Assembly (NCBI GenBank): GCA_050084985.1
Contig: JBITNC010000001.1
Location: 71,672,001-71,736,000 of the forward strand
Direction of reading: 5' to 3'
DNA: 64,000 bases
Origin: Nageia nagi
Taxonomy: Eukaryota; Plantae; Pinophyta
Shown here: in pieces, positions 1-53,767 of the stretch
Position numbering within the stretch: the first letter of the stretch is position 1
Layout of the letters: each line of letters begins with the position of its first letter
Translations under genes and position numbers: made by a program
The notes under the pieces: model-generated
The model's database searches: none
What the model saw: the letters and a program-made list of their open reading frames with translations, nothing else
What the model was told of the DNA's origin: nothing

Positions 1-1
1 A

Positions 2-14119: not shown

Positions 14120-17100
14120 TCTAACCCATCCAAATTGAATGCATTCTTTTGGATTTCTCAAATGATGGCATATGGGTCGAACCATAAGGAATCAAACTCG
14201 TGATGATGTCTTGGCTTGGTGCAATCCTCATCCCATTTCAACACCAAATCTCCCAACTTGAAAGCAACATTGGACACATACCTCTTGTCAAACCATCTCT
14301 TCATATGGTATTCCTCTTCTAAATTTCTCTATACAAATTCTCTCAAAGCTCATCTAGGTAAATAAGACCAAAATTTCTTACTTGCAATGGATCTATATCA
14401 TCCATGTCATATCAATTAAGTAGTTGCAAGGTAGGTAACTTGATGTGAGATGAAAGTATTGCTCATTTTCCATATACTAGGATATAAGGGGAATTTTTAA
14501 TTAATGATTTGTATATGATTGATCAATCCATAATGCTAGGTCGAGCTTCTTATCCCAATCCTTATATTTTTCAATTATTGTCCTCTTCAAGTTTTTTATA
14601 AAAAATTTTATTTGTTGACTCAACCAATATGTTACCCTATGAGTAGTAATTAGAAGAGGTATTCCAATATATATCATATTTTATGGAAAATTTTATAACC
14701 TTAGCTCCTAGAAATACTAGACCATTGTCAGATATAATAGTTTGTGGGTTGCCAAACCTTGTAATAATCTTCTCCATAAAAGAGATGAGTGTATCATGAT
14801 CTTCATGCTTGGTAGAAAAAGACTCCATCCATCTTGTGAAATAGTCTATAGCTATTAAGATGAACCTTTTTTTGGCTAAGTATAAAATCAAGGCCCCATT
14901 ATTGAAAATGTTCTTTTATTGTAATAGCATGCAACAGCTTAGCAATCATTCTTATTCTTCCTACAAATCAATGACACTTGTCACATTTTTTGGCAATCTA
15001 GAAAGAATCTATGTAGAAAAAGGGCTAGTAAAAACCTTCCTATAAAATTTTGGCAATAGTTGTATATCCTAAGTAGTGACCTTCATAGAATCCTTAATGA
15101 AACTCTTTTAACACTTCCTCAACTTTCTTTGGATGGATGCATCTCAATAGCATTTCATCATGATTTTTTTGGTATAATACATCTTCTATCATGCAATAAT
15201 TGAGTGCATTTAATTCAAATCTCCTTCTTTGAGAAGCATTAAGCTCAAAATGGAGTCTACCATTAGAAAAATATGTAAAAAGCTGAGTTATCCAATCATC
15301 TAGTTTTTCTAGAACTACTAGAAGTTCTTAATATTCATTTTTTCAATTTCTATAATCATGATATAGTTAAAGCTCTAATCTTGTGCTAATTTTTTATAAA
15401 GAGCTTTCCCCTTAATTATTTTGGTTGTATGTATTTCCACATTGTACTACAAAATCTTAGTGATCTATTTGGATTTGTTGAAATCCATATCACCTTGAAT
15501 AATATAGCTTTGTACATTTGGATGTATAGTAATCACTATGATATTGGTCTTGGAAATATAGTACTTAAATTTATTAAAAGATTTCATGATGGTAAACACT
15601 TATTTCTCAATAAATCCATAACTTTCTTAGGCTTCATGTAGGGTCTAGCTAAAGAAGGCTATGGGATGCTCATTTTCTTTTATTTCAGAACTATGGTAAT
15701 TCTCTTCTCTACTTTGCATCATACAAGATAAAGTCCTTTGAAAATTTTGAATTATTTAAGACTGGATAGGACATAATAGCAAATTTTATCTTTTCAAAAG
15801 CATGCACTTGTTCTAGTGTCCATTTGAAAGGCACATTATTTTTGAGCAATTATGTTATAGGCTAAACAATTTTAGTAAAGTCCTAAATGAATCTTCTTAC
15901 AAAATTAATTTTACCTAAGAAGGCTTGTAGTTTTTTATGTTAAACAAAATAGAAATATTGGATATGGCTTCTTCTCTCTTTGGATCAATGGAGAATCTAT
16001 CTTTTGAAATTACATGCTCAACTTTCCTTAATCAATGACAGAGATGGATTTCTTCAAACTCAATGAAATTTTGAACTCTTAGTGCTTCAAAAAGGTTTCC
16101 TAGAGATGTTGCAAGTGATCACTCTTTCATTTTGAAAAAATTGTAATATCATCTAGGTATACCAAAATAGATTTGTTGATTAATTTTCCAAATACATAAT
16201 CTATTTCCCTCTTAAATATTTCTTTGATATTTGATACACCAAATGGAATTCATTGGAAAGCAAAGGTACTCCATTTTATAGTGAATGCAATTTTGTGTTG
16301 ATTCTTCATCTTTTACCTAAATCTAATTATAGCCAAAGAAACCATCAAGGAGAGAGAAGCATTTGTATCTTGCAATAGTGTGAAGAATATTTTCCATTGG
16401 AGGAAAAGGGTAATTATCCTTAAGTGAGGATCTGTTGAGATTCTAAAAATCTACACACAACCTACTTTCTCCATTCATCTTCCTAAATGGTACTAGATTG
16501 ACTACCCAAGTTGATTATTTGATGGGATAGATGATCTTTGCTTGAAACAACTTTTGGATCTCTTATTACATTATCACTTATATTTTAGGGTTTATCAACC
16601 TTTATTTTTATTAAAAAGGTATTAATCCTTCCTTTAATTCAATGGTGTGTTGGATGACATCTTTATTGAACACCTTCAAGTATTTATAGCTCCAATACAT
16701 GATACCAGCAAACTCCTTCATGAGTTCAACAATCTCCTAAATCTCTTTAGATGAATTACTTAGACTAATCTTCAAAACTTTGTTAAGGCCTATCCAACTC
16801 CTTGAATTTTTTAGGAGGAGACACTATGCTTTCTTTTCTCACTTGATTGTCTTTGTTAAAGAGTTTTTTGAATGCTACAACATCTTTTGGTAAGGTATTA
16901 TTCCTTAATTATAACACATCTTCATCTCTAAAAGCCTCAACCAATGACTCTTGGCTATTTGAACATAACAATTATGTTTCCAATAATCTATTTATGTCTT
17001 CATCACTATTAAACACTTGCCAAAATAGTCATTGTCCAAGACAAAGGGCTTAAGAATTAGTTGGATACCTTTCCTCTTCAACCAATGATGAGTGGGATCA

Positions 17101-25160: not shown

Positions 25161-27275
25161 TTATTGAGCTATTTAAATAGGTTGATTGATTCTATTCCTT
25201 CATCTATGAGGTGAAATTGAATTCAATGCAGTGGTGGTCAAACTATCCCAATTGATCAATCAATTAGTACTATAACTGAATAATAAGTTCATAGAGTATA
25301 GATGGTGTACCAATCTAACTAATCACTATGTAACATACTAATTTGTACTGCATCATCATATTTTGCTGATTTCTTTATTTTTAGCTTTATTTGATCTTAT
25401 GTTAAGTTTATATGGTTATTACACTTTATAGGGATGATGAAAACTATATTTAGACTATTCTAGATAGGATTGGGAGTCTATTTGTGTGTGTTTTATTGGA
25501 TCTTGATCAAATTGTACTAAGGGTTAAGCATATCTTCTCAACCACTCTAGTCTATGTTGAGCTCAATCCTTGAGCTATATATACGTGTAAGCATTTCATT
25601 TTTTCATAATAAGAATTATCTCATTATGGTATCAAAGCTTTTAGATCCATTCAGTTAGAGGATAGCTTATGGGTTCATTTATAAAAATTAAAAACTTCTT
25701 GTGAGTTATAATCCCAAAGTTTGTTGATTTATTGGAGAAGAAATGGTTACCAACAACAACACCTTGCCCATTCCTAAGTTTAATGGAGAGGAGTATGAGT
25801 ATTATTCCATTAAGATGAAGACACTCCTCATAGGTAGGGATTATGGGATATCATTAAAGAAGGATTAAGTGAGCCACAAGACTTGAATATTCTTCAAGGC
25901 AATGATAAGAATGTAAATAAAGAGGATCAAAAGAAGAACTCTTTTTCTCTCTACCATCTTTAGAAAAGCTTGGATAAGAGTATCTTTCCAATGATACCTT
26001 CTTGTGTTTGAACCAAAGATGCTTGGAAAGTACTACAAGAAATTTATCAAGGAAGCACACAAGTGAAGCAAATGAGGCTTCAAATATTGAAGGGACATTT
26101 TTAGAATATCATAATGAAAGAGGAAGAGAGTGTGGGAAACTACTATGTAAGCATTAAAACTTATGTTATGAAGATGAGAACACTTGGTGAAATCATTTCT
26201 AATGAAGTAATGATGAAAAAAGTGTTGAAATCACTACTTCCAAGATAGAATAATATAGCCATTATCATTGAAGAGAGCAAAGAATTATCTACTTAACTTT
26301 GATATGCTCATTTTTTCCTTGATGAGCTAAGGCATTGTAACACCTTAGATAATATTATTGATATTTTCATTAAGGGAGTTACCAAAGCTAAGTTTATGAA
26401 GCTGAGGACTTTGTTATTGAGTACTCTTAGCATCAAAGGGGAGAATGTTGGACTTTCAACCACTCTAAGCTTTGTATTTCTAAAACTTTGACTCTTTATT
26501 TATAATCAATAAGGACAAGTCTAGCTAATCCAACTAATCAATTGGTCATTACTACATAACAAGCCAATTGATTCATAGAATACAAATGTTATATCGATCT
26601 AACTAACTAATTTGCAACATAAATATCAGTACTACATTATTAGATTTAGCTAATTTATTCATTTTTAGCTTTGTTTGATCTTGTGTTAATTTTAAATGGT
26701 TGTTACACTTTGTAGGGATGATAACAACTATGTTTAGACTATTCTAGATAGGATTGAGAGTCTATCTAAATGTGTTTTATTAGATTTTGATCGTATTTTA
26801 ATAATGATTGAACATATCTTCTCAACTATTAATTTATGTTAAGCTCAATCCTTAAGCTATATATACTTGTAAGCATTTCATTTTTCATAATGAGAATTAT
26901 CTCACCCTTGGTTAACTAATCGATACTACATAACTGGCCAACCAATTCATAGAGTATAGATGGTATACCGATCTAACTAATTAATCTATAACATAAAAAT
27001 AAGTACTACATTGTTAAATTTAATCAATTTATTCATTTTTATCTTTGTTTGATCTTATGTTAAGTTTAGATGGTTGTTATACTTTGTAGGGATGATAACA
27101 ACTATGTTTAAATTATTCTAGATAAGATTAAGATTCTATTTAAGTGTGCTTTATTGGATTTTGATCATATTATAATGGTTGAACATATCTTCTCAACTAC
27201 TAATTTATGTTGAGCTCAATCCTTAAGCTATATATACTTGTAAGCATTTCATTTTTCATAATGAGAATTATTTCA
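25161..27275 (+). mobile_element. Internally deleted Copia: 5' LTR, PBS, gag N-terminus fused to RH tail, PPT, 3' LTR, plus a tandem partial LTR copy
   Basis: The LTR ends tctca at 25623. PBS tggtatcaaagc at 25627-25638 (tRNA-iMet type). gag PKFNGEEYEYYSIKMKTLL; RH tail IDIFIKG..KFMKLRTLL. PPT at 26435-26445; 3' LTR 26446-26904; extra copy to 27275 (period 371). The 5' start is approximate. Confidence 0.85.
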
Positions 27276-27570
27276 CCCCTCTTTTCTCCCAATCCCACCC
27301 TCCTCTCTCACCCTCTCCCACCCTCCTCCATCCCCCTTGCCCTCTCCCCCTCTCCTTTGTCCCCATCATCCTCTCCCCCCTTACATGCCCCCTCCCTCAC
27401 CCTCTCTCTTTCGTACCCCCCTTCCCTTTCCTACCACCCCTACCCCCTTTTACTCCCCCACTAACACCCTTTACCCCTCCCCTCTCCCACTACATCCCTC
27501 CCCTTGCCCACTCCACCCTCCTCCATCCCCCTCGCTCCCTCTACCACCCTTACCCCCTTTCTCTCCCCCA
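27276..27570. repeat. ~300-bp C/T-rich low-complexity tract
   Basis: Nearly pure pyrimidine with many CCCC runs, followed by (TA)n near 27599. Confidence 0.9.
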
Positions 27571-27743
27571 TTAATAGTATTAAAAATTAAAAACTTAGAT
27601 TATATATATATATATATATAATATCTTGTTATTTAACTAAGTATGTTTACATGTAAAAACTACAAAAGTGAGGTGTTCCTACTAATACTCAAATCTTCAA
27701 AACAGAATTAAGTCTTCATGTACATTTATGTATATAAAAAATC

Positions 27744-28235
27744 TTAATCCATTATCTATATGATCATAATATATAGAGAATAACAATCCAATAAATACTC
27801 TCAAATGCTAAAGAGATAAATAATATATTTAGAGGAAATTTATTTTCTAAACTTTGCTTTAATAAGTTTGATTTAGTTTTATTCCATTCTTGTATAATCA
27901 AATTTATGCATAAAAAATGATAAAGGCTAATAAATCATAACTAGTTATCCCTTAATGAACTATTCAAAAACCAATAAACACCAATTCTATAAACCTAATC
28001 CATTACCTATATTACCATAATATATGGAGAATAACATTCCAATAGACACTCTCAAACCCTAAAGAGATAAATAATATGTTTAGAGGAAAGTTCTTTTTTA
28101 AAACTTTGATTTAGTAAGTTTGATCAAGATTTATTTCATTCTTGCATAATCAAATTTATGCATAAAGAATGATACAAGACTAATAAACCATAACTTGTTA
28201 TCCCTTAATGAACTATTCAAACACTAATTCTATAA
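27744..28235. repeat. ~250-bp tandem duplication
   Basis: taatccatta..gagaataaca..agagataaataatat..tttagaggaaa..cccttaatgaactattcaaa occurs at ~27744 and ~27995. Confidence 0.85.
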
Positions 28236-30364: not shown

Positions 30365-31656
30365 GTATGCTCATTGACCTCCTGTATTTAACGAAATGGA
30401 TTTGCGATGTCATGTGCAAAAATTAGTTTTCAATGTACTTTTGGGGACCCAAGGCACATTTGGGGACAATCACTTGAAAAACTTTTAAGTAAGTTGGTAC
30501 GCGTAACATGCTATACTTAATATAAATTTTATGTAAAAAAAATTTAAAAAACTAACACAATTAAAAATAACTAGAAAAAAAATCTAATGAAAGTCACTAA
30601 AAATTATTAATCGTCATAGAAATTTTTATTTACAAGTAATTTTTTTTTTTAAATTCCAACCCTGGTTGGAACATTAACCCACCCCTTGCATTGGTGATAT
30701 TTAAAAACTAATGATATTAAATTTGATGATACTTAAAAAGTGATGATGGGACCTATCAACCAATAGGTTTAAAAGGATGTTATTAACTTCACATTTTTAA
30801 GTTTTAAATACATTTCAAACATCACAAATTCAATAATTCTATACTTTAGATGAGTTCTAACGAAATTTAAAATTATAATCCTTTTTAAGAGGTATTGTTA
30901 TTGATTATAAATAAAATTTCATTCTTATGCTATAATTAAAAAATAATAATACTTAATTTAGTAGCATTATTCATATATTTTAATTATCACATAAAAAATA
31001 TTGATTATTTTTATTAATTTATACATATTATTTATTATGATTTAAAATTAGTACTTTTAAACATACACTTCCTTCAAATGAATGCAAAATAAATTGTAAG
31101 ATTTGTCCATTATTTATTTTATCATTTAATGCAAAGTGTTATTATTAGAAAATATTGATTATTACTTACTATGATTTAAAATTAATAAATGCAAATAAAA
31201 GCATTGAAATAATAATTGCAAAATAAAATGTAAGATTTATTTTATTGATTGTTATATTACCATTTGGTGCAAAACGTTGTAAGAATTTTAAAAAATAAAT
31301 GTTATAAATTTTTTTTGGATAAAATTTATTTAAATTTAGAATATAAAAAATAAAAAACTAATATAAATATATTTTTAGTCCATTATAGTTTGTTATTTAA
31401 TTTTTAAAAAAAATTATAATATTGTTATTTCTTAAAAAATATTAAACTATATTTTAAATGTAAACATATTGAAAAAAAATACAAAATATAATGTTTACCA
31501 TGATATATCCATTAATATATTAAGTTATTAAGTTATAAATACATATATGAATTATTTTTAAATTAAAAATTCATTGCAAATAGAAAAAACAGTAAATAAA
31601 TTTAAGAAATTTAAAACTAAATACAATCACAAACAAAAAGATGACAAGACACAAAC

Positions 31657-31684
31657 TTTTTAGAGGGTGTCAACCCTCTAAAAA
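31657..31684. other. Perfect hairpin (12-bp stem, 4-nt loop); candidate 3' terminal hairpin of a rolling-circle element
   Basis: tttttagagggt-gtca-accctctaaaaa, at the boundary between the very AT-rich tract and the chimeric locus. Confidence 0.6.
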
Positions 31685-32615
31685 AAATAAATTTTATTGA
31701 TAAATATTACATCAAGAAATGAATAATTAAAACCTGCGATTTAATTGGACTTTGACTTGACTCTAATTGTTGGATCAGCTACAAATATTATTCCTATTGC
31801 AGAAAGATGAATTTATTTCTTTTTTGCCTACAGTTCCACGGTCAGAGCTACAGAAAGATGAAAATAAGGGTCATACACAACAATAGATCATCATTAGAAG
31901 ATGATAATCTTCTGGAAAGAAGATAACAAATCTTTCAATTTCATTGCCATCCATTTTTTATCTTGTTCTTAGTCATATCTGCAAAGTAACTAATAAACTA
32001 ATTTAAACAACTCAACTCTAGACAAATTCTATTCTAACTATTGATTGATCGCACAAATTTTGATATAAAATGAGTCCAAATGAAAAGAGTGAGTGTTTAT
32101 CAGAGCCTCTCTTACTCCAGTCATATACCTTTGCATCCTTTAATGTTACAGTCCCTGATTGTTGCTCTCCTGGACTAAAAAAATATTAACAGAAAATCAG
32201 TCTTGATATCAAGAAAATAGCTTCAACAGAGAAAAAAATATAAACAAAAAATCCATGAAAGTACTTGCATGTAAAGATATCTAATTACCATTTTGGAGGA
32301 GCATAAATATCAATAATATAGATGACAGTATGAAACATTTCTTTCTTCCAATTCAAAGAGTCAAAACAAAAAAATACTTACCATAGCTTGCATACAAATT
32401 CTTCACACTCATAAGGAAAATATGATACTTAAGAAATTGAGAACGAGCTACATTCCAGTGTTAAAAGACTTTCATAACATCCTAAGCAAAATGAATTGCA
32501 AATAAATGGATTCTGGTGCATATACATTCATGACAGAAAAACTAGCAGGTTGATGCAAAAAGAAAAGAATGTATGTTTAGTAACATGAAAAAATTGTCCA
32601 TTCCCTAAAAATAAC

Positions 32616-34977
32616 CTTGGCCAGGGAGATAGTGAAGCCCCTCCAGTTGTTGGGCTCGCACTTATGTTCCAATTACTGCCAGCTTTAGCAGATGCTCCAA
32701 CAGCATGACCAGCTAACAGATGCTCCAATATTGGGTAAAAATGTGAATCCAAATCAAGAACAGCATCAACATATGTCTGCAAAATAGCAGTTGTCAATGG
32801 TTAGTTGTTTTGTAAGTTTAACAAAAGCATAAGATGCTCTAAGGAGAGACTCCCTCGTATAATTATTTGCACATCATTTTCTCATAACAGCAAAAGTTTA
32901 TAGCATTCAACTTCACATTATATCAATTGACTATGTTATTCTTGATTACTACAGGAGATTTATACAGCCACATATCCTGTAGTGCAACTTATATAAGTGA
33001 TAAGAAATATGGAATTTGACAAAAAAACTTGCTACTTTGTAAGTATTTTCTGTTTGGTGCATGCTGTAGCTTTGTTAAAGCTATGCCATGTGTAATTTAC
33101 CTGCATACATATATGTTAGAAACTGATGGTGTCACATGTTATCCGCTAGCCTACTTATAGATATTTAGCTTTTCCATTTTGAATTAGTACCCTTTCGTAC
33201 ATGGAATCCGACACATTCAGATGATAATAAGCCTAAATGTTTAATATAAAAAGTGAAGCACTGGCTCTCTCTCATGCAAGAGAAATTTCCTTGTGTGCGA
33301 GCTTCCATATGTGGCATGTCAAAGCAAAAGCACAGATTTTTGATTTCTCGAGTATCAAGAGTAATCACTAGGCATATAAAATAGTAAATCCAGTGATGAT
33401 GAAGCGCATTTAGGAGTTTCTTAAGACGATGATCTGTTTTTCTGAGGACCAACCATAGATCATCAGCATTGTGCATATTGAAAGGATAACCCATTCTGCT
33501 CTCCCACAAAATTAAGAATATTTGGGCTGCTAGTAGATTGAAGTTAGGTCAACCTACAAATCATGCATGCAATATAAGGTGATCTTGAAAGTTTTATAAA
33601 AAGTAAAAAGTTAAAACTAATTGGTAGGGATCGTCTACAGCTCTGAGAGTAGAAATCCTAGATAACAGTTCATTGTGCTTCAGTCCAGAGGAAATAACAA
33701 AATATTGTTGATGTTTCCTAAAGCGATTTAGAAGAACATCTATGTTTTGCCACAGCAGCATATCCTTTCATGTTATTTAACTATTGTTTAAATAAAATAG
33801 AGAGTACAAGTGCTTTAAATATATTTCATTATATATAGAATGCTATTTATACATTCTCATAATAAACAATTCTCTCCATTATTTTTTATTGGCTCCTGTT
33901 CGGTGCATGGTGTGGTTTTTTCAAAGTTATGTAACAGATTTTCGAGTTTAATAACTACATCCTCGTATTCACAAGAAGTTAGGCGGCAGAAATGGAATGA
34001 ATCAGTTATCAAGTATTTTCATTTGAATAGTTCCAATACATTCCAATTTCAAAAGAATTTAGGAAACAGAGTCGAAAACAAATCCAACCTAAAAAGTTAA
34101 AACTATGTCTGTAAACAGACCCATAAGATGTGATCTGCAAAAAACTTGTTGGCAAACTCAGCCTACAAGATCACTAGATAAAGTCATACATAGTCCTACA
34201 AATATATGATGTAGGTATGGTTTCAAGATCTATTTATTCAAGTGCATGAAATTTCATCTCAAAAAGCATCAAACATTCCACAAGAGGTTGTCAAAAGAAT
34301 AAAATTTTGAAGAAATACCCTTTTAAAACAGAGTATGCATTGAAGAAATACTCAATAATATGAGGAAAAAATAAGTTTTTATTAAAACCAATCTCTTGCA
34401 ATATGACATTAAAATTATCTAGCAAACAAATTTTGTCTGATTGGACATCACATTTACTTTTTTTCCCTGTACAGAATACAATGTAAATAATAGCCCAATA
34501 TACTTGAACAGGGCATGGTTATTGTCGATCCACTTATGCACTTCTTGTTCTCTGATGCCTTACAAGCATTTTCTCAGAGAGGGCAGGAATGAATAACATT
34601 CATAATCAGAACAACGCAAAACTTTATTTTGCATTTTGCTACCTTAGATACATACAACTATACGAGCATCATATCAGCAAAAATGAATATGATTATTGAA
34701 TCCCTTCCTGCAAGGTAGCATAAACTCAATATCTTACGCAAAACTCATGTATCATGCATATAAGAAACATAATGATTTCCCAAAAAGTATAGTAGTTGAC
34801 CTGTATACCAAGAACAAGAGCTGGATCAGGTATTAGAGTTGCAAGATTCACAAGGGCAGATTCGATGCCTTATCCCAACACGTCAAGCAACAGCCTGGCT
34901 TGCATATTTAGTACAAGTGCCCTAACATCTTGGGCAACTAGCCCTTGGAGTAATCTGCACTTAATTCTATCCAAAGC
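32616..34977 (-). pseudogene. MED16: Two consecutive MED16/SFR6 (Mediator tail subunit) exons with their intron; internal stop and deletions
   Basis: Exon 34977-34801 reads ALDRIKCRLLQGLVAQDVRALVLNMQARLLLDVLG*GIESALVNLATLIPDPALVLGIQ. Exon 32776-32616 reads TYVDAVLDLDSHF..LAGHAVGASAKAGSNWNISASPT. These match recalled SFR6 LDRIKCRLLEG..MQARLLLDMLGKGIESALVN..DPALV..IQ|AYVDAVLDLASHF. CAG/GT borders are intact. Confidence 0.88.
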
Positions 34978-35669
34978 CTGTAAAAGGAACCAGATTATTA
35001 ATTGATGTCCAAGTCCTATAAACATAAAAAACTGGGGCATCCTCTCTCGCACATTCCTTAAAATTTGATTTGATTACAACCTGTCACAGTTCGTTAAGCA
35101 ATGATATTTAATATGGTAATATAATGAATATGAAGGTTTTGGGGTCTCTTCATCTCACCTTAAATCTCAAAACAAAATATCATGCTATCATACTAACTAA
35201 AAGACTGGCAGATTGGTGCTCATGACCAATCTCATATTGAATGATAAACTCAGACAAGCTCATTTTGAATGATGAAAAGATCAACAAGATCAAAATCCAA
35301 ATGGAAACTTGACCAAACAAGAAACCTGTTAAAATGATGGCAGATCATTAATACTTGGAAGTAACAACCAATGGGTTTAAGATATGTAATAAATTGATCA
35401 AACGACATATCCACCTTGGTTTGTAATAAAATAATAAATATGTTATGCATTGCAAGAGTATGAGATGAAATAAGCAATGACAGCAAGATGCATGATGTAG
35501 CTAGATATTACTGATGATGGTATATTGATTTACTCGTACATGCAATTCTCCATTTTAACCCTTAAGAACAGGGAACACAAAAGGAAATCATCATATGCAA
35601 AGCCTTGCAATGTAATGTTTTCCACTTATTATCTAAATCGAAGATCAAAAAGCTCACATATGGACATGT

Positions 35670-36377
35670 TACACTCCACCTTGCTGTTGGTAAGTGTCTT
35701 AGTGGATTTCAAGCATCATACACCAGTATACTATAGATATTTGTCTCAAACTCAGTTATTCAAATCAGCTATAAATAGCATATTGGCTGTTATGACCCTT
35801 ACGATGCTTTTAAATTTCAATACCCAAGTACTGTAAAACTTGGGACACACGGTAGTTTGAGGGTATACAAAGTTTGGACTACAAGACCTGACTCCCAGTG
35901 AAAAAATCAGGATAGTAACAATTTGCCTATGGATCTAGCCATCTATCAAGGTTTTAAACAACCGTCCACAAACAAGGATTTCTAAATATACAAAAACTTT
36001 ATGAAGATAAAACAAATAACAGACAGATGTTATGATATATGATACACAACTCCAAAGATGTCTCGAAAACACCATTTCATCCCATGTAGAGCTTTGGCCA
36101 CCAACTCCTGAGTAGAGTATTATGGCTCATATCCTACACATTGGAGGTAAAAACTGAGAAAAACTATAAAAAAATTCTTTACGCAAAATATGTATAAAAC
36201 ATCTTAAAATTTGGAAACTAATCAGAAGTGAAAGGCACTTACCACGTTCCTCCTCATAACTGCTAAGCCTCCATGGGTGCTAGTATCAGAGGTTGTCAAC
36301 GTCTTATAGAATGAATGCCCATTACTTTTTAGTTTTGGAGGAGGAGGAGGACTTGGATCACTGGAAGACACAGTTTG
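35670..36377 (-). pseudogene. ARF: Three consecutive auxin response factor (ARF) B3-domain exon fragments
   Basis: Exon 36377-36243 reads QTVSSSDPSPPPPPKLKSNGHSFYKTLTTSDTSTHGGLAVMRRNV (ARF: HSFCKTLTASDTSTHGGFSV.RRHA). Exon 36133-~36050 reads DMS..TQELVAKALHGMKWCFRDIFG with a frameshift. Remnant 35708-35670 reads NPLRHLPTARWSV. Confidence 0.9.
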
Positions 36378-37033
36378 CTACGGAAAAACGCACCCATGAA
36401 ACTCTCCAAACATTCAACATGCACACCAAAATGGCAGAACCTATATAACATGATGAATTTAAATGAAAATGCATCTATTACCTCCCTATGGCTTTGGAGC
36501 CAAAGTATTCTGTGCGTAAACCTCATTGACTCCTATTGAGACTTTAAAAGCAATAAAACATAGCTAATGTAAGGAGAATTCAACAGAAACCATGCTACGT
36601 TTTGATGTGTTCATACTGCAAAAGAAACAAAACAAAGCCCCTGCACCTTAATCCAATTAACACCTAGATGTTGAGACCCTAGAAAATAAATGAAACAAAG
36701 CCCCTGAATTTGGTGCTCCTCCATGATTTCTGATGCTGCAGGCTAAGCAGAGGACGACGCGGAGGACCAACCCATTACATTGAATCACACATGGCCCTTT
36801 TCAATTTCAAATGCCCAACGGTCAAATCCAAGGGCCCTTTACTCCTTCAATAACCGTCATGGTGTCAAAATTTCATAAAAAATTCACCTAGATCCCATAA
36901 AAATGTTTTCCCACATATGTGTTAGGATTGGTAGTAGATACCCTAGCCCAAGTTTTCTTCTATCTGGTTTAGAGTGGCAAGTGACAACATAGTGCCTTAA
37001 AAAGTGAAGGATATCATATAACATGTGAAGTTA
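36378..37033 (-). promoter_or_regulatory. Putative promoter/5' leader of the chimeric locus
   Basis: GC/CpG-rich patch at ~36735-36830 (gaggacgacgcggagg), an ATG at ~36724, and shared sequence with the inverted copy at 44825-45355. Confidence 0.45.
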
Positions 37034-40994: not shown

Positions 40995-42190
40995 TACTTG
41001 TGCAAGAATATGGATCCACTTTATAGCCAAAAAGTGGATGCTTTTTCTTTGATTTTTAGTTTGGTCACAATTGATCTCAAAATTTGAAGCACCTAGAGAT
41101 GGAATCTTGAAAAGGTCACTTTGGTAAAACTGTAGTGCTCCAAGTTTAGTTTTTAAATATATAATTTATTCCAATACCCATATGATAAAAATTAAATTTT
41201 GATAGACATATATAAAAATCATTATTTAAAATTTATAGTTTTAGGACCATACCTTTAATTGTTGGGCCAATATATTTTGACCTAAATTGAAGTATTTTTA
41301 AAAAAATCTTTTTGGGAAATGGTAGTTAAAACATTGAAGAATGTTGAGAATATTTTTTCATAATTTTTTGATAAAAAAAAATATTAATTTTTATTGGCCC
41401 TAATTATGTTTTTTAAAAGTGCTTTTGTTGGGCCACCATAACTTGACCTAAACTTATCCTTTTTTAGAATTTTTTTTTATTTAGTAGATAATTATGTGTA
41501 TAATGTTGTCATATAATTTATTTCATAATTTTTCAAAAAAACAATTATTAAAAAATAGAACAACATACTTTTTCAAGTTTATAGATAAGTTTGATTAAAA
41601 ATTAATCAAAAAATAGAAAATGTAATCCAATTATAAAAAAAATTACATATTTGAAATCTACACTCTCATATATAATGGGTTTTAATTTCATAAAAAAAAA
41701 TCTAAAAAAAAATTATCAAATGCATGTTTGAAGTTGGATTTTTCCATTGCTATTGATAGGAACTTGCATGTGCATTTCCAAGGCTGAGGATTGGCTCACC
41801 ATGCCTCTCCCAAGCCAAAATACAAGGCAAACCCTAAGGGAAGCAAATTAAAAATTTGGAATGGGATCCTGTTATAAAATGGGATCTCGATATGAATAAC
41901 ATTCTATTATATATCGAGGTCCTATTATTTAAAGTACAACATATCCATGTTAAAAGGAATGAGATCCTATTTTGCATGAATTTGTAATTTTCAAAATGGG
42001 ATTCCATTTATAGTTTTTTCAAAACAAGATCCCATTTTGAGTTTTTCAAAATGGGATCCTATTTTCATTTTGGCTTAGGAACCTGAAATAAAATGGGATT
42101 CCAATTTTTATAACATAGGATCCTATTCTATCTAAAAACAATTCAACTTCACTCATGTCCACTTTTAGTGGACCCAACTTCTTGCATGCA
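40995..42190. mobile_element. ~1.2-kb non-autonomous TIR element, copy 1
   Basis: Imperfect TIR tgcaagaatatggatccact / agtggacccaacttcttgca and a subterminal array of gggatcctatt motifs at 41860-42130. Homologous to 54360-55578. Confidence 0.65.
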
Positions 42191-42718
42191 CCCCCCAATT
42201 TCCTTACTCCATAGGCCACCATGTGTTCACCTTCCAAAATAAGTTAAAACTATAAACATAGATCCATAATGTAACCATCTCATTAAAGAGAGTTTTCATA
42301 GCCAAAAATCCATTCTTTTCCATTTAAGCTTAGATGTTTGTTGCCATTGACACCTTGGGGTTTTCCAAAGAATATACAAATGCTGCTAGGATCACCTGCA
42401 TCCACATATATGGAATGAGTTCAAACCCTTCTCAAAAATGATATGACTGAATATTTATCAAGTTACAAAGACTCTTTGAATGCAATCATATGCCTCGACA
42501 TCCACCAATATTGCAAACCTTGATTATTTCTCTCTTTACTTTCTAAATAAATATTAAGTAATAAAAATTTAGCTTGATATTAAGAAAATAAATTTAATAT
42601 AAAGAAACATGTCACATAAAAAAATCAATAAAAAAATTACATGTAAATATAAAAAATATATTTTTATTGGGACATAAAAAAAAATTATCATTTTAGAAGA
42701 GGTGATGTTGTTGTTCAT

Positions 42719-42925
42719 GGGGTGTCCTCTCTTGGATGTTGCTTAAAATTTTACTTGACTACTACCTATCACATGTCAGCTCAATTGACCTTTTTGAGCA
42801 ATGATATTTAATATGGTAATACAATCAATGAAAATAATTGTGAATATATATTCAGATATGAGGGTATTGAATATGATCTCAAATTCATCATCATTTATGT
42901 AAATATATTCTTAACCTTCAAAACA
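42719..42925. repeat. Degenerate direct copy of intron sequence 35033-35175 from the chimeric locus
   Basis: 25-bp identity agcaatgatatttaatatggtaata at 35097-35121 and 42797-42821, with alignable flanks (tgggg..tcctctct..cttaaaattt..acct.tcaca). Confidence 0.7.
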
Positions 42926-44824: not shown

Positions 44825-45355
44825 AATTCACATATTATGTGATATCCTTAGCTTTTTAAGTCACTTTGTATTTTCTTACCACTCTAAACCAATCAATAGA
44901 AAACTTGGGCTAAGGTATCTACTAACAATCCTAACACTAGAAAAACATCTTTCTAAAACTTGTTAGTGATTTTTAAATGATAATTTGACACCATGACAAT
45001 TCTAAAAGGGGGAGTGGAGAGTTTTTGAATTTGATTGTTGGGATTTTGAAATTGAAAAGTTATCTATGTGATTCAATGTGAAGGGTTAATCCTTTCTTTT
45101 TCCTTTCCATGTTGTAGCTTACAAATACACAGTAGTTTCACTTTAGTTTTAATTTCTTTACAAGTTCATTTTTAGGGTCTCAACTTCTAGATGTAAATTG
45201 GATTTAGGTTCAAGGGATTTGCTTTATTTCTTTTGCATTATATAATTGAACACATCAAATTTTGGCATGGTTTTTATTGAAATATCCTTACATTAGCTTT
45301 GTTTTATTTCCTTTAAAAGTTAAATAGGATAAACCAATGTTTATATATATATATA
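44825..45355 (+). repeat. Inverted degenerate copy of 37033-~36515 (part 1)
   Basis: ccactctaaacca, gaaaacttgggcta.ggtatctacta.caatcctaacac, tttgacaccatgac, tgtgattcaatgt, tagggtctcaac and tccttacattagct all match the reverse complement of 36515-37033 in order. Confidence 0.9.
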
Positions 45356-48300
45356 TGTTAACACCTAAAAAGGAATTTTAATTTAATTTAAATATCATTT
45401 TAGGTATTTGAAATCATTTATTTATTAAATTAAATAAATTCTCTTATCATCATGCACTCTCATCTACCTTTATGTTTTATGATAACAAGTCAGCTCGACA
45501 TCACCATAAGCCCAATGAGGAGCCTTGGCACTAGACCTTGATAGGTGGTAATATACTTGTGTCATTATTGACCAATATTTCTTAATGCCACCTATCATAT
45601 TTGTATTTTTTTACACACTGACCTTTACATTCATGTGATACTTTCAATCCATTTATAAATAATATTTTGAGCTTCAAAGGAATGACAATGGCATTGAATG
45701 AAAGGGTAAGATATCTTGGAAAGCTAACCAAAAAACATCACTGAGATTCTAATGTTGTCATTGGATTGAGGTCATATTGGTGGCTCCATTCTTTAAGGAA
45801 GCTTCTCATTCATCTCCTTTTAGTTGAATATCACCTTCATTTATCATGATAGGTAAAGTACAAGTTTGTATCTTTAAATCCATTTTGATAGGTCAAGGTC
45901 GATGAGGTTATTTTCATCATATTCATACTTTGATTTACTATTATTTCATTATAAATTAATTAAATTGAATATTGTAAGTAGCCCTAATAATTATTATTTT
46001 AGTTATTATAGTCTACTTAGGTTGTACAATAGAATAACTTTGAAGTTATTTATTTGTTATGAAGGGCATATCCATGTCTAAAACACTTGAAATGTAATAT
46101 CATTCATATCTAAAAACCCTAGGTTTTTTAGCCTAATTAATGAAGGATAAATGATGTATTGAAAAGAAGTCAAGTTCACCAATAAAAGATCCCCCTCGAG
46201 TTAAACCTTCAGCCTATCAAGAACACCTCTTTTGTAACTTCCATAGAAGATCCGATCATGCCATAAAAGATTATTTTCATTTGAAAAATTAATATAGGAT
46301 TTGCATAATTAAGCAAAATTTAAGTTTGATCATTAGGTTTTAGATGAAGTTTACAGCAACATGAGATAAGGGCGATATAAAATGGGCCACAAAATGGACC
46401 CATATATCTATAAAATAAAAGGCTAAGGATCTTTAATCATTCATTTCCATAATTAAAGAAGTAAAAACTTGATGATGATGGGAAGAAATTGCATACTAAT
46501 ATTGTAAGTGTTTCTTAACCATAGCCACAACTACAACTACAACAACCGTTGGTTCTAAGTATGATTCTTGATTTTGATGGTATTTGGGTTGTTCCATAAA
46601 TTTTTTCTTATATTTTCCTATTTGTCTATTTATTTTTTATCATTAAATGAAAATATAAAATAAATCCTTAAAAATTACATTTTTTCAATGCTTGTATCCT
46701 AGCAATGCCACTAAATTCTAGTGATGTTACTAGGTTAATAAAATAATAAAATTCAAATGAGATAATCAAATTAGTAATTAAAATATGTATTAATTAAAAA
46801 TATTTTTTGTTAGGCAAAATTAACAAACTTAGCCATATGTTTCTCATTCAGTAACCTAGGTTTTTCAGTATTCATCTCCATTTGATCATAGAAGTTTAAT
46901 GTGTTTTTTCCTTGTCTTATAAATATTTATGAATTATATTTCTTTTGTAAAAAAGTTCTTTATCATTAACCAAGCGATGTCACTATATTCCAACAACATA
47001 ATTAGATTTTAATCTTGTTCTATGTGACTATTTATTATTTTCATGAAAATTTGTTCTCCTCTACTCATTGTTACAATAGTGTCATTCTTAGTTTTCGTAC
47101 AAATTTCATTTTAAAATCATTGAAAATTATGTTGTAAAATACTTATAAATATTTTTATTTTGTCTCTCACAAATATTTTTATGTGCTTTTCAAAGTGGTA
47201 TGTGTTTATTTCCTTTTTCATTATTTGTGTTTCTTTATATTTTATCTAATGATTATAACAAAAAGAGTAGCATGAACAATAGATTAAAATAACACACACA
47301 ACCTAAAAAATATATCGCCAAAATATGTCATATATATATATATATAATATATCATATTTGATACATATAATTCCCACCATGGGAACTCTGACCCACATAA
47401 GGGTTACAAGTGTGAGTCCTAGATCAAGACCTAGACCTACTCCTAGAAGTTGATACTACTTTCAAGGTTTGACCAAATTATAAAATTTGATTATCCTTTT
47501 CCAAAATCAATTCCTAGAGCCTCTTCATCTCCTAATGATGGATGATGTGCTAAAGGGACTACAATATCTCTATCTATCCCTATAGGGCCCCTATCTATTG
47601 TTCACATGTAGCTAGCATGTCCTATAATCTTAAAACCTATGCTTTTAGAGTTCCATTTGAACCTCTAAACTTGTTTCATGAATAAATAATTAGTTTATCA
47701 TAAATTTTTTGTAATAGGTCAACCTAGATAAACCACATTCAAAATGGATATACCTGAGATATAGGCCAAGGGTGCCGTAACTCCAGATGAAGATGGTACA
47801 AAAGGACCCATAACTCATTTAGAAGATGATAGACCATAAATATACATGGGCTCCTTCTCTTTCTTTGGCTCCTTCTCCTCCCACTCTGCCTCTTCTACCT
47901 CTCTCTCCTCTTTATCAAGATCTAATGACACATGCCTCATAGTATCCTACTAGAACCAATAATCCTAGGTGTGCTGAGGATGCGAATTTGGTACCCTAGG
48001 GGTGATGGAATTGAAGGATTTCATAAACCAAGATCACCTTGAAGCTTCTCCAACAAATCTAACATTCATCCTTCTATCAAATCAATAATCAATCACACAA
48101 AAAATAACACATCATGTGTAGTGGTTCCTCCATCTCTTGGGAGCACATCCACTTTGAACCATCATTCTATTACTTCTCACGAGATAACTCTCCTACAAAT
48201 TATTAAGAATTATTCTAAGATAATTCTTCTACAAAGCTCCTATAAGAGCATCTCTATAAGACAAGCATTACCATGCTTCATCAAGTTACATAATAAGGGG

Positions 48301-51300
48301 AATACCTCTCTATTTATAATAATAAACTCACCTCTTAACCATCCTTTTACCCAAGGGTAATGTTAAAAGTGTTTCTATATTTATTCCTCTTTCTATATTG
48401 ATTATATTAATGCTTTAAGGTGTCTAAATATACTTTAAGCATTAAGTGAATTTACATTAACAAGAAATATTATATAATATTACATTATAATTTTCAATAA
48501 GGGGCATGATCCTTAGACTCCTCCCACTCTACACTCCAATTGGATATAGAACTCCAACATGAATGGCTTGATATCTATAGTACCTAGCCATAGTTGGCCA
48601 AATCCTATGAATAGGTACATCTCATGTCATGCTAAATTGATAGAGTAACCTATCTTAATGATATAATTCCATGATACACCTATATCCCTAGATGTGATAT
48701 GGAGTTATACTCCATGAGAACTCCTCATTTGACTCATCCCAAACTAGTAAGTTAAAATAGGGATCCCATATGATATCCACCTCATCCAAAAGGTTCAACA
48801 ACCTCCAATACTATTCAACTCCCTGTGTAGCATCCATCCTTTGGGTCATCTACCACCTAGACTAATGGGGTATGTCTACCTAAATAATTGTAGGTAAATA
48901 GGTCCTCACCATACCAATATGCTCATAGGCCCATTCCTATAAGATGAATGAATGAGCAACAATCTTGTATCCCTTCCTCACAAAAATAAAGCTTTGAAGA
49001 TCTCTATACAACATAGCCAAAATGCATGATGCCCATGCATATCTCTTCTTATGTAGATATATCTCCTAGAAAATAAGAATCAACCCTATATGGAAGCATT
49101 CATGATTCTTATCACTACATAGGATAGTGTCGATAAGAACCAAAACATATAGTCATAACCATTATGTATTATTTATATCCTTTAGGGGTACATAAAATAT
49201 GTCATGAATGGGTACCACTTTCTTTTATTGATGATAATCCCACACACTTATAAGCCAATAGCAATGCTCCTCCATCTCCTCCATGGACAATGTGGCTCTC
49301 TATATCAATGTACTATTCATGGGTACCCATAAGATATGATGAATGTCAATTAGGGTGAGAGTGATCTCACCCATCGGCAAGTGAAATATCTTTATATCAT
49401 CACACCAACTCTCCATCAAGGTTATCAAGAATTACTTGTCACATGGGATGCAAGCAACAACCCTCATGTGACCAAGTTCAAATGTATCTAATTATCCCCT
49501 CTCCTCACTAGTGAGCATAAATGCAATAGCCACATCCATAGTGGGACTCCATGGCTTGCATCTCATCATATATGCATGGTATTGCACCCATTTCAAATAT
49601 AAAAACTATCAATAACTAAGTAAATAGGTAATAAATGCAATTTACAAAATTAAGTGAGGTAAAAATCTAACATTTATTGCTAAAATAAAAGAATTTAAAG
49701 TTAAATTTTAAACTTTGGAACATGTTAAAATCCATACAACCACTAATAAATGCATTTTTAGAAAATTTGAACCCAACAATGATGCTAGGATCCTAGTAGC
49801 ACCACAAGATTAAGGTGCCCATTTTTAGAAAATATTAAAAACCCATCAATTTTTCCTCTAAATTTATGGCAAAAATGAGTTCATTTTTACTCCATGCATG
49901 CAACAAACTAGCCATTTTGTTTTTACCCCTATAATTTTTATAATTTGCAAAAATTAAGAAAACTTGATCAAAAAAATTTGATCCTTAAAAAACATCCATA
50001 TACATGCTAAAAGAGAGGATTTCAAGAAATTTTTGGTACCTAATGTCCTTGGGACAAGGAATTACCAATAAGATCCCTATGGACCTAACCAAAAAGTAAT
50101 ACATTGGTCCATTCTAGTAATAGCTACAGTCTAAAAATTAGTAGCTCCTCCACTGTCCTTAAATAACTCAAACTAGCACCAAGAAAATTGAGAACCAAAT
50201 ATCAAGATTTTCAAATGCAAAAGTGAAAATGAAATATCAATATGCCTATTTATAAACTAACTTGCCCCCTTTTTTAATTATTAATTACATTAAACTTCAT
50301 TAAGTTTTCTAAATTATTAAGTTTTTTTTCATCTTCAACCCCATATGCATCCATCTCTGATCAACTCTTCATCTCCTTCAGGTCCCTTAAATTGGATGAT
50401 GTTGGTGTGATCCAGGCAACATCATTGGCTTCCAAACCTCCTTTTAAAGAATTTCCTTTATGTAAAATTCAAAAACCCTCTGCATGTAATAAAAATAAGA
50501 ATGTCAATACATAATTAGTCCAAAATTTTTAAATAAATCTCTTGGGGAAAATTGTTAAAATTTAACATGAAATGATCATTAAATTTTAAAATACCTATTT
50601 ATGTTGAATGAAACATGCAACATTTTTAGTTCATTAGTGCCACACAGAAACTCAAAGCTTTTCTTTTAATAAAACTCATGCATTATTCCAATGATGTTGT
50701 TGCATTTCTAGTGACACCGCTAGGTTATCAAGGTAAAGCATGTTCCATTTTAATGTAAAGGCTCATCATTTACAGTAAATTCATGAAAAATATGTCTCAT
50801 TCATTAGGTTATATCTCTTTTCATAATTTATACACATTAAATGGTTCTTGTTGATTCATTAAAACTATCATCTATCTTGTTAATGCATATCATGTTTTAA
50901 TAAAACATTAAATGTAATGTATTGCATATCGTAATATCTCTTATAATATGCATTGATTTTCATAAATATTGCATATAGATTAGTTTCCATTTTGTAAATA
51001 CTTATCATTGTTAATGAATACTTGTCCATGTTTTTACAATGCATCCATGTATACTTTTATATCATGTCTACTAGTTATACTATTAATAAGGTATTTATCA
51101 ATGGATGTGAATGGTACTAATGCATATCTCTACATATCATAACTTATCATACTATGGTAAAAGATGTTTGCACAAATTTTGCTTATCAAATATTTCTTAT
51201 CATACATTTCTTATCATATCTCGTTACAATGATTTGATTTGATTCTTATCATATATGATTATCATATCTTATCATATGTTAAAAGTGCTTTTCATATCAT

Positions 51301-52682
51301 ATTATTGCTCTTGTCATTGGCTTCCTTTGTAAGGGAGGGGCACTCTTATCAATTGTTTCTTTTTTAAGGAAGGGGCATTCTTATCACTTGATTCCTATAT
51401 TAGGGAGGGTCATTCTTATTAGAAATCCATGGAAACATGGTGGCTTGTGAAACCAAGTTGATGACTCTTATTATTTGACATATTTGTAAGGAAGTTCCAT
51501 TTTTAAGTATCACTTTATGACTCTATAAAGAAGTGTCATTATTATTAAAAATCCATGGCAACATGGTGGCTTGGGAATCCAAGCTGATCACATAAGTTGG
51601 CAATATATCTTCATACTCTTGGTGGGTAAGGCACCAAGGATAGGTTTGATATATTATTATTTAAATGTCTTACATATTATGATATTTAATGTCTATATTT
51701 GAGATATCTTGCATAAAACATTTCTTTTCTAAGTTCTTTTCATATTCCTTTATCTTTACCTTGGATTGCTCCTATGATGAGAGGTCCATCATGTCGCAAC
51801 CAAGATAAAAAGGAAGCATAATAATGGTGAAAAACTAGGGAATCCAAAGCTAGTACCATGAAGAATTTTTTTTTCAAGGAGTATTTTCTTACTTATCTTG
51901 TTATATTTCAAATTTATGCTTTGATTATCTTTTGTCCCAAAAGCATCAAATCATATTCAAAGTGGGGCATCTATTAACACCTAAAAAAGAATTTTAATTT
52001 AATTAAAATACCTTTGTAGGTATCTAAAATAATTTATTTGTTAAATTAAATAAATTCTCTTATCACTATGCACTTTCATCTACCTTTATGTTTTATGATA
52101 ATAGGTGAACTCGGTATCACCATAAGCCCAAGGAGGAGCCTTGGTACTAGACCTGCTATCTATAAAGGTGGAAGGGTAATGCATAAGCAATTATAACATA
52201 ATCTTAAACCCTTGATAGATGGTAATATATGTGTTTCATTATTTATGGGTCTTTCTTAATGCCACCTATAATATCTAGATTTTGTTATACATTGAGCTCT
52301 ATATTCCTATAATACTTTCAATCCATTTATGTATGATATTTTGAGCTTTAGTGGAATGATGATGACATCAAGCAAAAGGGTGAGGAATCTTGTAATTGAG
52401 CAATGTCATTGGGATCCTAGTGCTATCACTAAGTTGAGGTTGGATTTATGGCTTTGTTCTTTGGGGAAGCTTATCGCTCATCTCTTTTTAGATGAATATC
52501 ACCTTCATTCATCGTGATAGGTAAAGTATAGGTTTGTATCTTCCATAAATCTAATTTGATAAGTCAAGGTCAATTAGGTCATTGTCATCATATTCATTAC
52601 TTAGATTTACTATTATTTCTTGATAAATTGATTAAATTGAATACTATAAATAAACCTAATAATTATTATTTTGGTTATAATA
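45356..52682 (+). mobile_element. 7.3-kb non-autonomous Tat/Ogre-like LTR element (LARD-like) with PMD cargo and no detectable gag-pol
   Basis: LTRs at 45356-46010 and 51972-52682, PPT aaagtggggcatc before the right LTR, and TSD atata/ataca. The flanks rejoin as one continuous sequence. Confidence 0.85.
47700..49580 (-). pseudogene. Degenerate PMD gene
   Basis: 49420-49320 reads LMESWCDDIKIFHLPMGEITLTLIDIHHILWVP. Boundaries approximate. Confidence 0.8.
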
Positions 52683-52687
52683 ATACA

Positions 52688-52917
52688 TAATAATTTATCC
52701 CCAAAGCTAAAGGTAGGTAATAGATCCATTTTTATTTAAAAGGATCATGTTTGGTGTAGATGTTGAATGTTGGAGGATTTTAATGAGTGGGTTTTTTGCA
52801 AGAAAATGAATATTCTTATGATCCAATCCCTCCCCCTCCTCCACCTCTAAAAAATAGAATAGGCATTCATCCTATGAGACTTTGGCAACCTCTAATACTA
52901 TCACCCATGGAGGCTTA
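52688..52917 (+). pseudogene. ARF: Inverted copy part 2: intron end plus ARF B3 exon
   Basis: ccaaagc..aggtaatagat.catttt.atttaaa..gatccaa.ccctcc, then RHSSYETLATSNTITHGGL (52861-52917), homologous to 36515-36264. Confidence 0.88.
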
Positions 52918-53572
52918 TCACCAACTATTTTCTTCACCTTAAGTGTAGTTGATTTGTATTGGTACAATCTTTATGCATTAATGCCAGGAACTCCACTAAG
53001 TGATCATAAGAAGCATAAAAATGGTAAAAATAAAATATTATTGATTATCCAAATATTATAGCTTATTACATGCACTTCAAAATACCATATTTCAAAAGGA
53101 GGTGTTAAAAAAAGAAATGAAAGTAAAAGAGTTTTGGTGTAGATATGAATGGTAATATTCACTAGCCTCTCCACATGTGCAAGGTTTTATATGGCTAGAG
53201 GGAGCTTTAAACATGGATAATATAGATTGGATAAATGAAAATGGAGTAAAAAATTCACAAATATATTTTGATAAAATTGTGCATACATGGAATCCTCAAG
53301 GGGGATCCACATCAATGGAATATATAGGTAAGAATAAATCATCTAAGTATTTAGATATAGATTTATACAAGAATTATATAATAAACATAAATATCCAAGT
53401 CACTATGATATGTGTATTGTAGGTATTTCAAAATTTCTATCAACACCCATATTTGAGAAATACACAATAACTAGCACAATTGATGCAAATCTAGATTACG
53501 AAGAGATTCCTAATTGTGTAGAGTGTCACACAATATTTAGAGAGGGTCCTTGCCTAGAAAAGAAAAGAGGAA
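52918..53572 (+). mobile_element. Helitron-superfamily Rep (HUH) domain remnant, Helentron/Helitron2-like
   Basis: Motif 1 SPTIFFTLSVVDLYW. Motif 2 FWCRYEW*YSLASPHVQGFIWLEGA (53132-53206). Motif 3-like DYEEIPNCVECHT..GPCLEKK (53494-53570). A putative GT-AG intron at 53328-53422 joins motifs 2 and 3 in frame. Confidence 0.8.
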
Positions 53573-53767
53573 ATATGGTTTATATGTAAGTACTTATAAC
53601 TATTTGAATTAATTAAAAATATGGTTAGTTATCAAAATTGAGCTCTGTTATGCTAAATAGATAATTATATAAAACTTAAGTTTTTACACACTTAAAATAA
53701 AATATATATATATATAGTAATTTAAATCTTTATATTTATATATATCCATTATTCCTAAACTACTTTT

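Follow-up and report, generated by a model that had tools for sequence, protein, structure and literature searches.

A decayed mosaic of ARF and MED16 gene fragments in the genome of the conifer Nageia nagi

How did pieces of an ARF gene and of a MED16 gene come to lie together, on one strand, in a short block of repeat-rich conifer DNA? The question is raised by a locus of Nageia nagi in assembly GCA_050084985.1, contig JBITNC010000001.1, positions 71,672,001-71,736,000 of the forward strand. This stretch of 64,000 nt was analysed as a whole, is referred to as the window, and provides all of the coordinates used below. The locus, here called block A or copy A, occupies 31657-37029 on the minus strand, is 5.4 kb long, and consists of an ARF fragment and a MED16 fragment. 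A preliminary description placed the two fragments in tandem, ARF then MED16, and assigned the whole to a Helitron. The account that we favour, with a probability of roughly 0.55, is that block A is a dead duplicate of an ARF fragment carrying a repair-type patch of MED16 DNA, produced in at least two DNA-level steps. Block A is non-functional, a dead mosaic pseudogene, and in this sense is ordinary genomic debris.

The limits of block A were set using steps in GC content and homology with a second, partial copy (copy B2, see below). The GC content is 30-41 % within the block and 13-26 % in the flanks, and in the composition profile it jumps from 13 to 30 % at ~31650-31700 and falls from 39 to 26 % at ~37050. 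The homology between copies A and B2 begins sharply at 37029, with the sequence TTCACAT in both, and the flanks upstream of this point are unrelated, their alignment score being no better than that of shuffled sequence. The block is thus a discrete same-strand mosaic of two incomplete genes, as had been proposed, with a 5′ boundary that is common to a second copy.

Every exon relic in block A contains stops and frameshifts, and a long open reading frame (ORF) is absent from the block. Both the ARF and the MED16 parts are incomplete and are broken by stops, frameshifts and deletions. The ARF relics are still separated by introns, as are the two MED16 exons, which agrees with the earlier statement that copying was at the DNA level and that neither gene is complete. 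Block A is not a processed pseudogene (retrocopy), which would be intronless and end in a poly(A) tail, as introns are present. In the window, which is ~31 % GC, the ratio of observed to expected CpG is 0.12, whereas the ARF part and the MED16 part of block A each reach ~0.3. Deamination has worn the block less than the DNA around it and has affected both of its parts to an equal degree.

Exon relics were searched singly, and comparisons with long published motif strings were made by eye. Pfam was scanned with every exon relic and with the Rep-like ORFs described below, without a match, the sequences being too short or too decayed. Word-index searches of proteins with the ORFs of ARF exon 1 and MED16 exon 2 and with the Rep-like scrap were also blank, and are uninformative because their length window (0.55-1.75× query) excludes full-length relatives. 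Rfam had no match in the window.

The ARF relics are collinear on the minus strand and match both solved ARF structures and an ARF gene contig, L001 (ERZ1034427 NODE-5757, positions 1-1930), that was used as the ARF reference. L001 is a 1.9-kb contig from a metagenome scan. It carries part of a plant class-A-like ARF gene, with six or seven exons of the DNA-binding domain separated by short introns, and is host DNA in a metagenome. The matches run, in order, through residues 113-150 and 166-185 of the Marchantia ARF DNA-binding domain (6sdg), residues 231-249 of ARF1 and exons 1-5 of L001, and this places the fragment in the ARF family.

The first relic, '...LCFIAFKVSIGVNEVYAQNTLAPKP*' (36482-36613), lies upstream of the first exon of the B3 domain, and 'NEVYAQNTLAP' can be read in it by eye. 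This resembles ARF motif 8, NLP..C..NV...TDEVYAQ..LQP (PMC11317251), and NEVYAQ was found by a motif scan. PDB and Pfam searches with the 25-residue piece gave no match. The preliminary description had recognized three ARF exon pieces at 36377-35670, and these were confirmed, exons 1 and 2 by PDB and exons 1-3 by L001. B3 exon 1, SFYKTLTTSDTSTHGGLAVMRRN (36243-36377), lacks ~8 codons before the donor and has matches in PDB (E 3e-9 to 6sdg and 1.7e-7 to ARF1) and in L001 (1.8e-6). B3 exon 2 (36054-36133) reads DMSHNTL, then, after a frameshift, QELVAKALHGMKWCFRDIF; all five of its PDB matches are ARFs (best E 0.017), and the E value with L001 is 5.5e-4. For B3 exon 3, NPLRHLPTARWSV (35670-35717), a PDB search found no match, and the assignment comes from L001, where 'QPKRHLLTTGWSV' is 56 % identical to it (window-wide E 0.33, or 0.004 when the search was restricted).

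Two further relics, which the preliminary description had missed, continue the order. That at 35350-35560 reads NGELHVRV, a frameshift, NIPSSVISSYIMHLAVIAY and then FYYKPR. The segment 'NIPSSVISSYIMHLAVIAY' (35529-35473) matches the ARF1 residues with E 0.04 (PDB) and L001 with E 0.001 in a restricted search, and FYYKPR resembles, by eye, motif 4 of PMC11317251. The exon-5 relic (35137-35267) reads SLSEFIIQY and, after a 24-residue spacing to VSM, LRFKVR*RDPK. It matches exon 5 of L001 with E 0.043 in a restricted search, agrees by eye with motif 4 at 7 of 9 positions, and fits the ARF exon pattern '..SPSEF[VI][IV][PS][LY]...GMRFKMRFE..' (motifs 4 and 9, PMC11317251). PDB and Pfam searches with the exon-5 ORFs found no match.

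The small AG/GT-bounded segments that had been noted at 32174-32129 and after 31978 do exist. However, they are not MED16, and by eye are ARF-like. The first is a putative mini-exon of 46 nt, '..QQSGTVTLKD', resembling the ARF pattern 'R[YF].GTI.G..D'. Possible last ARF relics lie at 31840-31977, namely DKKWMAMKLKDLLSS (~31960-31915) and L*PW.EL (~31860-31840), which can be compared with ARF motif 5, SKWRS[LV][KQ]V[RG]WD[ED][PS][ST]...RVS[PL]WE[IV]E (PMC11317251). PDB, Pfam and L001 searches gave no significant match for either the mini-exon or 31977-31840. By eye, the three segments 3′ of the MED16 piece resemble ARF '..GTI.G..D', 'SKWRSLKVRWDEPS' and 'VSPWE.E', in the correct order. The ARF relics extend further than first described, to ~35234 with tool support and, judged by eye, perhaps to ~31840.

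The MED16 fragment, 32318-35032 on the minus strand, is found only in copy A. The two MED16 exons of the preliminary description were recovered, with limits refined by tblastn to 34977-34807 and 32782-32633. They correspond to residues 705-761, with an in-frame stop and a deletion of ~20 residues, and residues 782-835 of XP_061349376 (P0013), a 'mediator ... subunit 16-like' protein. In tblastn searches with MED16 proteins the first exon gave E values of 1e-17 to 1e-19 and the second 1e-5 to 1e-10, and Acorus MED16 aligns likewise to both. The identity was obtained through a full HMMER search with a 60-residue ORF, which returned proteins that NCBI names MED16. Pfam finds Med16_bridge in residues 653-802 of P0013 with an E value of 5.6e-4, below the family cut-off. 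The exons match named MED16 proteins in the central helical bridge region. They are consecutive, as another protein (P0009) reads through both, and are separated here by an intron of ~2 kb. No further MED16 exons were found in the window, and the segments at 32381, 32174-32129 and 31978 are not MED16. PDB searches with the MED16 pieces gave no match.

How the two fragments are related to one another can be seen from the partial sister copies, which were found by self-comparison and using nhmmer within the window; nhmmer yielded only three shared stretches, S1, S2 and S3. S1 (36261-37029) is common to copy B2, which lies on the plus strand at 44827-52920, and S1 is 72.6-72.9 % identical to 44827-45329 plus 52685-52920 on that opposite strand. 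With an LTR (long terminal repeat) retrotransposon nested in B2 taken out, the shared stretch is 790 bp at ~73 % identity, and the earlier observation that the 5′ ~770 bp (37029-36261) is shared with a neighbouring copy therefore stands. In our reading, S1 starts in an ARF intron, passes through the 'EVYAQ' exon and a further intron, and takes in the beginning of B3 exon 1. B2 is cut short within ARF exon 1, past THGGL. Exon 1 reads TSDTSTHGG in A and TSNTITHGG in B2, and A is the less decayed. The retrotransposon accounts for a gap of 7.3 kb in B2 and sits in the ARF 'EVYAQ' exon. It spans 45358-52682 and is old, with LTRs (45358-46010 and 51974-52682) that are 78-89 % identical, and its interior ORFs revealed no pol domain.

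S2 and S3 are shared with copy B1 (42408-42831, minus strand), which was defined using self-comparison and tblastn. S2 (35033-35131), which we read as the start of an ARF intron, is 70-71 % identical to 42831-42718, and S3 (32063-32317), which contains the mini-exon, is 65-67 % identical to 42688-42408. S2 starts 6 bp after the ARF exon-5 relic, and 'FEG*E' can be read by eye just upstream of B1, at ~42900-42920. Like the far downstream segments, S2 and S3 are probably ARF. In B1, S2 and S3 are contiguous apart from 29 bp, whereas in A they are separated by 2715 bp (35032-32318) containing both MED16 exons. Copy B has no match to MED16 proteins in tblastn. The 29-bp filler of B1 was considered as a remnant of the MED16 insert and rejected, as its sequence is unrelated.

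The simplest reading of this comparison is that the MED16 piece is nested within an ARF intron, whose flanks are still contiguous in B1. The tandem arrangement previously proposed is thus not what the copies indicate, and in place of a single breakpoint between 35670 and 34990 there are two junctions, at 35033/35032 and 32318/32317. The MED16 fragment occupies the place of the 29 bp present in B1 and is not accompanied by a target-site duplication. The replacement of 29 bp and the lack of a target-site duplication argue for a repair-type (filler or templated) insertion, rather than transposon insertion or capture at an element end.

These observations suggest the following scheme, in which both the order of events and the repair mechanism are inferred. 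In a first step, a genomic piece of an ARF gene, comprising most of the DNA-binding domain with its short introns, would have been duplicated as one discrete unit, its 5′ end being fixed. This would have left three partial copies in the window, A being the most complete, B1 retaining intron 5 and the mini-exon, and B2 the 5′ 790 bp. Because the three pieces of the unit lie within 21 kb, local duplication and rearrangement are favoured over transposition as the carrier of this step. In a second step, confined to copy A, a 2.7-kb MED16 piece (two consecutive exons and the intron of ~2 kb) would have been patched into the ARF intron in exchange for 29 bp, leaving neither a target-site duplication nor element-like ends. 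All parts would then have decayed through stops, frameshifts, deletions and loss of CpG.

Three points weigh against this scheme. First, the ARF identity of 32174-32129 and of 31977-31840 depends on by-eye comparison with published motifs. Second, B1 may instead have lost a MED16 piece by deletion. Third, a shared sharp 5′ end, a hairpin at the 3′ edge and the lack of terminal inverted repeats and target-site duplications are what would be expected of a rolling-circle element.

The last point leads to the explanation that survives best after the one that we favour, namely that a non-autonomous, Helitron-like rolling-circle element transduplicated the ARF fragment and later added MED16, and is kin to the copy that abuts a Rep-like scrap. 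We consider this possible though on balance unlikely. Block A is discrete, its sharp 5′ end is common to A and B2 in unrelated flanks, no terminal inverted repeats, target-site duplications or tandem repeats beyond chance were found around it, and stepwise capture is known for maize Helitrons (PMC3288121). In the preliminary description the common orientation of the fragments was taken as the Helitron pattern; however, two fragments will fall on the same strand by chance in 50 % of cases. The terminal features of HLE1, HLE2 and proto-Helentron elements, with criteria taken from PMC3288121, PMC4067079 and PMC11417382, were looked for, and the Helitron assignment was not supported by them.

At the 5′ end, HLE1 elements begin with TC after an A. 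Copies A and B2 both read T|TCACATG, in which the TC follows a T instead of an A; immediately outside the TT there is a C in copy A and an A in copy B2. The 5′ flank of copy A is not A, and an A|T target is lacking. The shared 5′ part also contains ARF exon relics and, since the 790 bp are made up of these and of presumed ARF intron, no recognizable Helitron left end remains. At the 3′ end, a stable stem-loop stands exactly at the compositional edge of the block (31657-31684, minus strand; TTTTTAGAGGGT tgac ACCCTCTAAAAA; 12-bp stem, -12.8 kcal/mol, z-score -5.2). With ~13 comparable hairpins per 64 kb, the chance of finding one within 50 bp of a given edge is ~2 %. In HLE1 elements a palindrome of 16-20 nt stands ~11 nt ahead of a 3′ CTRR that is followed by T. 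However, the 40 nt that follow the palindrome of block A (GTTTGTGTCTTGTCATC...) contain neither CTRR nor CTAG 10-12 nt past the palindrome, and the sole CTAA is inside the stem. The hairpin has no second copy in the window, so the 3′ end is known from one copy only, and the 5′ terminus recurs only in B2. The region adjoining the hairpin, 30750-31650, is extremely AT-rich (13-17 % GC) and includes a 134-bp tandem duplication (31026-31135 and 31160-31273) and palindromes.

A T is found at both edges of the block (T|TC... and ...G|TTT), as for HLE2 insertion at TT (PMC4067079), though this is weak in DNA of 13-25 % GC. The 12-16-nt terminal or subterminal inverted repeats of this group were not found. 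A comparison of the first 50 nt, reverse-complemented, with the final 700 nt gave two weak matches of 10/12, where 4.4 were expected, and neither was near the end. Proto-Helentrons start with TT, end in CTAG and insert between A and T; block A has the TT start but lacks CTAG, and copy A is flanked by C and by A or G.

Kinship with a Rep-bearing copy had also been claimed. The 5′ part is indeed shared, with B2, but within the window this is the only terminal sharing with anything resembling an autonomous RepHel element, and what stands beside B2, on the same strand, is a Rep-like scrap of ~150 residues (53130-53586, plus strand; ..YEWQYSLASPHVQGFIWL..), with no helicase downstream. By eye it has an HUH-like motif and a partial 'E.Q....SPH.Q', compared with the Helentron Rep motif (V/I)ExQxRGSPHxH (PMC4067079). 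Pfam found nothing in it and ESM Atlas returned only noise (scores ~0.80), so its identity was not confirmed by searches. The scrap is internal and is joined inside ARF exon 1, which makes that junction secondary. Two further features sit poorly with a rolling-circle origin: the MED16 piece interrupts an ARF intron midway, in place of 29 bp, and three pieces within 21 kb suit local rearrangement better than independent insertions.

A narrower form of this explanation would make the block a non-autonomous gymnosperm element of Helentron or proto-Helentron type whose ends are atypical (they start with TT/TC and close with a stem-loop, and lack CTAG and subterminal inverted repeats) and that took ARF and then MED16. 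We regard this as improbable. If true, it would document the capture of more than one gene, step by step, by an HLE2-type element of a seed plant.

It could also be supposed that the ARF gene died in place, the AT-rich flanks being later insertions in its long introns, and that B1 and B2 were copied from it. The gene-like order of exons and the short introns, from 36613 to ~31840, would fit, as would the lesser decay of copy A relative to B2. However, the N-terminal (WHACAGP, YFPQGH) and PB1 motifs were absent throughout the 64 kb in a motif scan, and it would be an unlikely coincidence for the start of homology with B2 to fall at the compositional edge of A. We give this little credence.

Capture by a transposon of another class, such as a Pack-MULE, CACTA or hAT element, or in the interior of an LTR retrotransposon, is less credible still. 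In gymnosperms all major superfamilies capture exons (PMC13477047), and the B region lies between two direct repeats (41001-41821 and 54367-55197). Block A, however, has no terminal inverted repeats, target-site duplication or surrounding LTRs and so does not have the structure of a Pack-MULE or other element with terminal inverted repeats, and the kept introns argue against an RNA route. Finally, neither a chimeric assembly nor an expressed and functional fusion of ARF and MED16 has anything but the unusual juxtaposition in its favour, and both can practically be dismissed. There are no N letters in the window and no repeat at the MED16 junctions, and the stops and frameshifts in every exon relic and the lack of a long ORF argue against a working gene.

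The remainder of the window is rich in repeats. A Ty1/copia pol fragment at 1-2344 (plus strand) includes an integrase, SH3_retrovirus (5e-22) and RVT_2 (2e-37), and an integrase-core fragment (rve, 6.6e-10) lies at 14640-14915 (minus strand). The copia sequence, together with ARF and MED16, marks the window as plant DNA. Repeats, tandem and dispersed, of ~350 bp (82-88 % identical) and ~230 bp (88 %) occupy 25272-27278 and 27745-28228, and beside them, at 27204-27618, are proline-rich low-complexity ORFs in three overlapping frames. Three pairs of direct repeats with 74-80 % identity (41001-41821/54367-55197, 53767-54357/55967-56551 and 55580-55920/56550-56891) may represent either old LTRs or dispersed members of a single repeat family. 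The first of these pairs encloses B1, B2, the nested LTR element and the Rep-like scrap.

On the reading that we favour, block A is of interest as a gene fragment nested in the intron of another gene's fragment for which a sister copy would preserve the 'before' state, and would be a clean, small example of a repair patch. Were the unit shown to be mobile, the Helentron-type elements of conifers, of which there are few good descriptions, would gain a non-autonomous family that captures genes. We recommend that such loci be masked when ARF or MED16 families are annotated or 'chimeric genes' are called. We also note that several gene fragments on the same strand are insufficient evidence for a Helitron.

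Among known processes, filler or templated repair of double-strand breaks inserts ectopic DNA with the loss of tens of bases and leaves neither a target-site duplication nor element termini. The MED16 patch of block A is alike in these respects, although 2.7 kb is at the large end for such patches. With the non-autonomous Helitrons of maize (PMC3288121), block A shares same-strand fragments of more than one gene, introns, the lack of terminal inverted repeats and target-site duplications, and a 3′ hairpin. It differs in lacking a 5′ A|TC, a CTRR ~11 nt past the palindrome, an A/T target and a partner with which both termini are shared. Unlike HINEs/DINE-1 and proto-Helentron elements (PMC4067079, PMC11417382), it has neither 12-16-nt subterminal inverted repeats nor a CTAG end. 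The closest setting is provided by the gymnosperms themselves, whose genomes contain on average ~400,000 captured gene fragments, with ~395,000 annotated pseudogenes in Platycladus orientalis, and in which ~14 % of the transposable elements that bear fragments are mosaics of more than one donor gene (PMC13477047). Like these captured or duplicated fragments, block A is intron-containing, decayed and partial and lies in DNA rich in transposable elements. Unlike them, it has no identifiable host transposon, and one of its fragments appears to be nested in an intron of the other. Block A is an ordinary object among gymnosperm gene-fragment mosaics.

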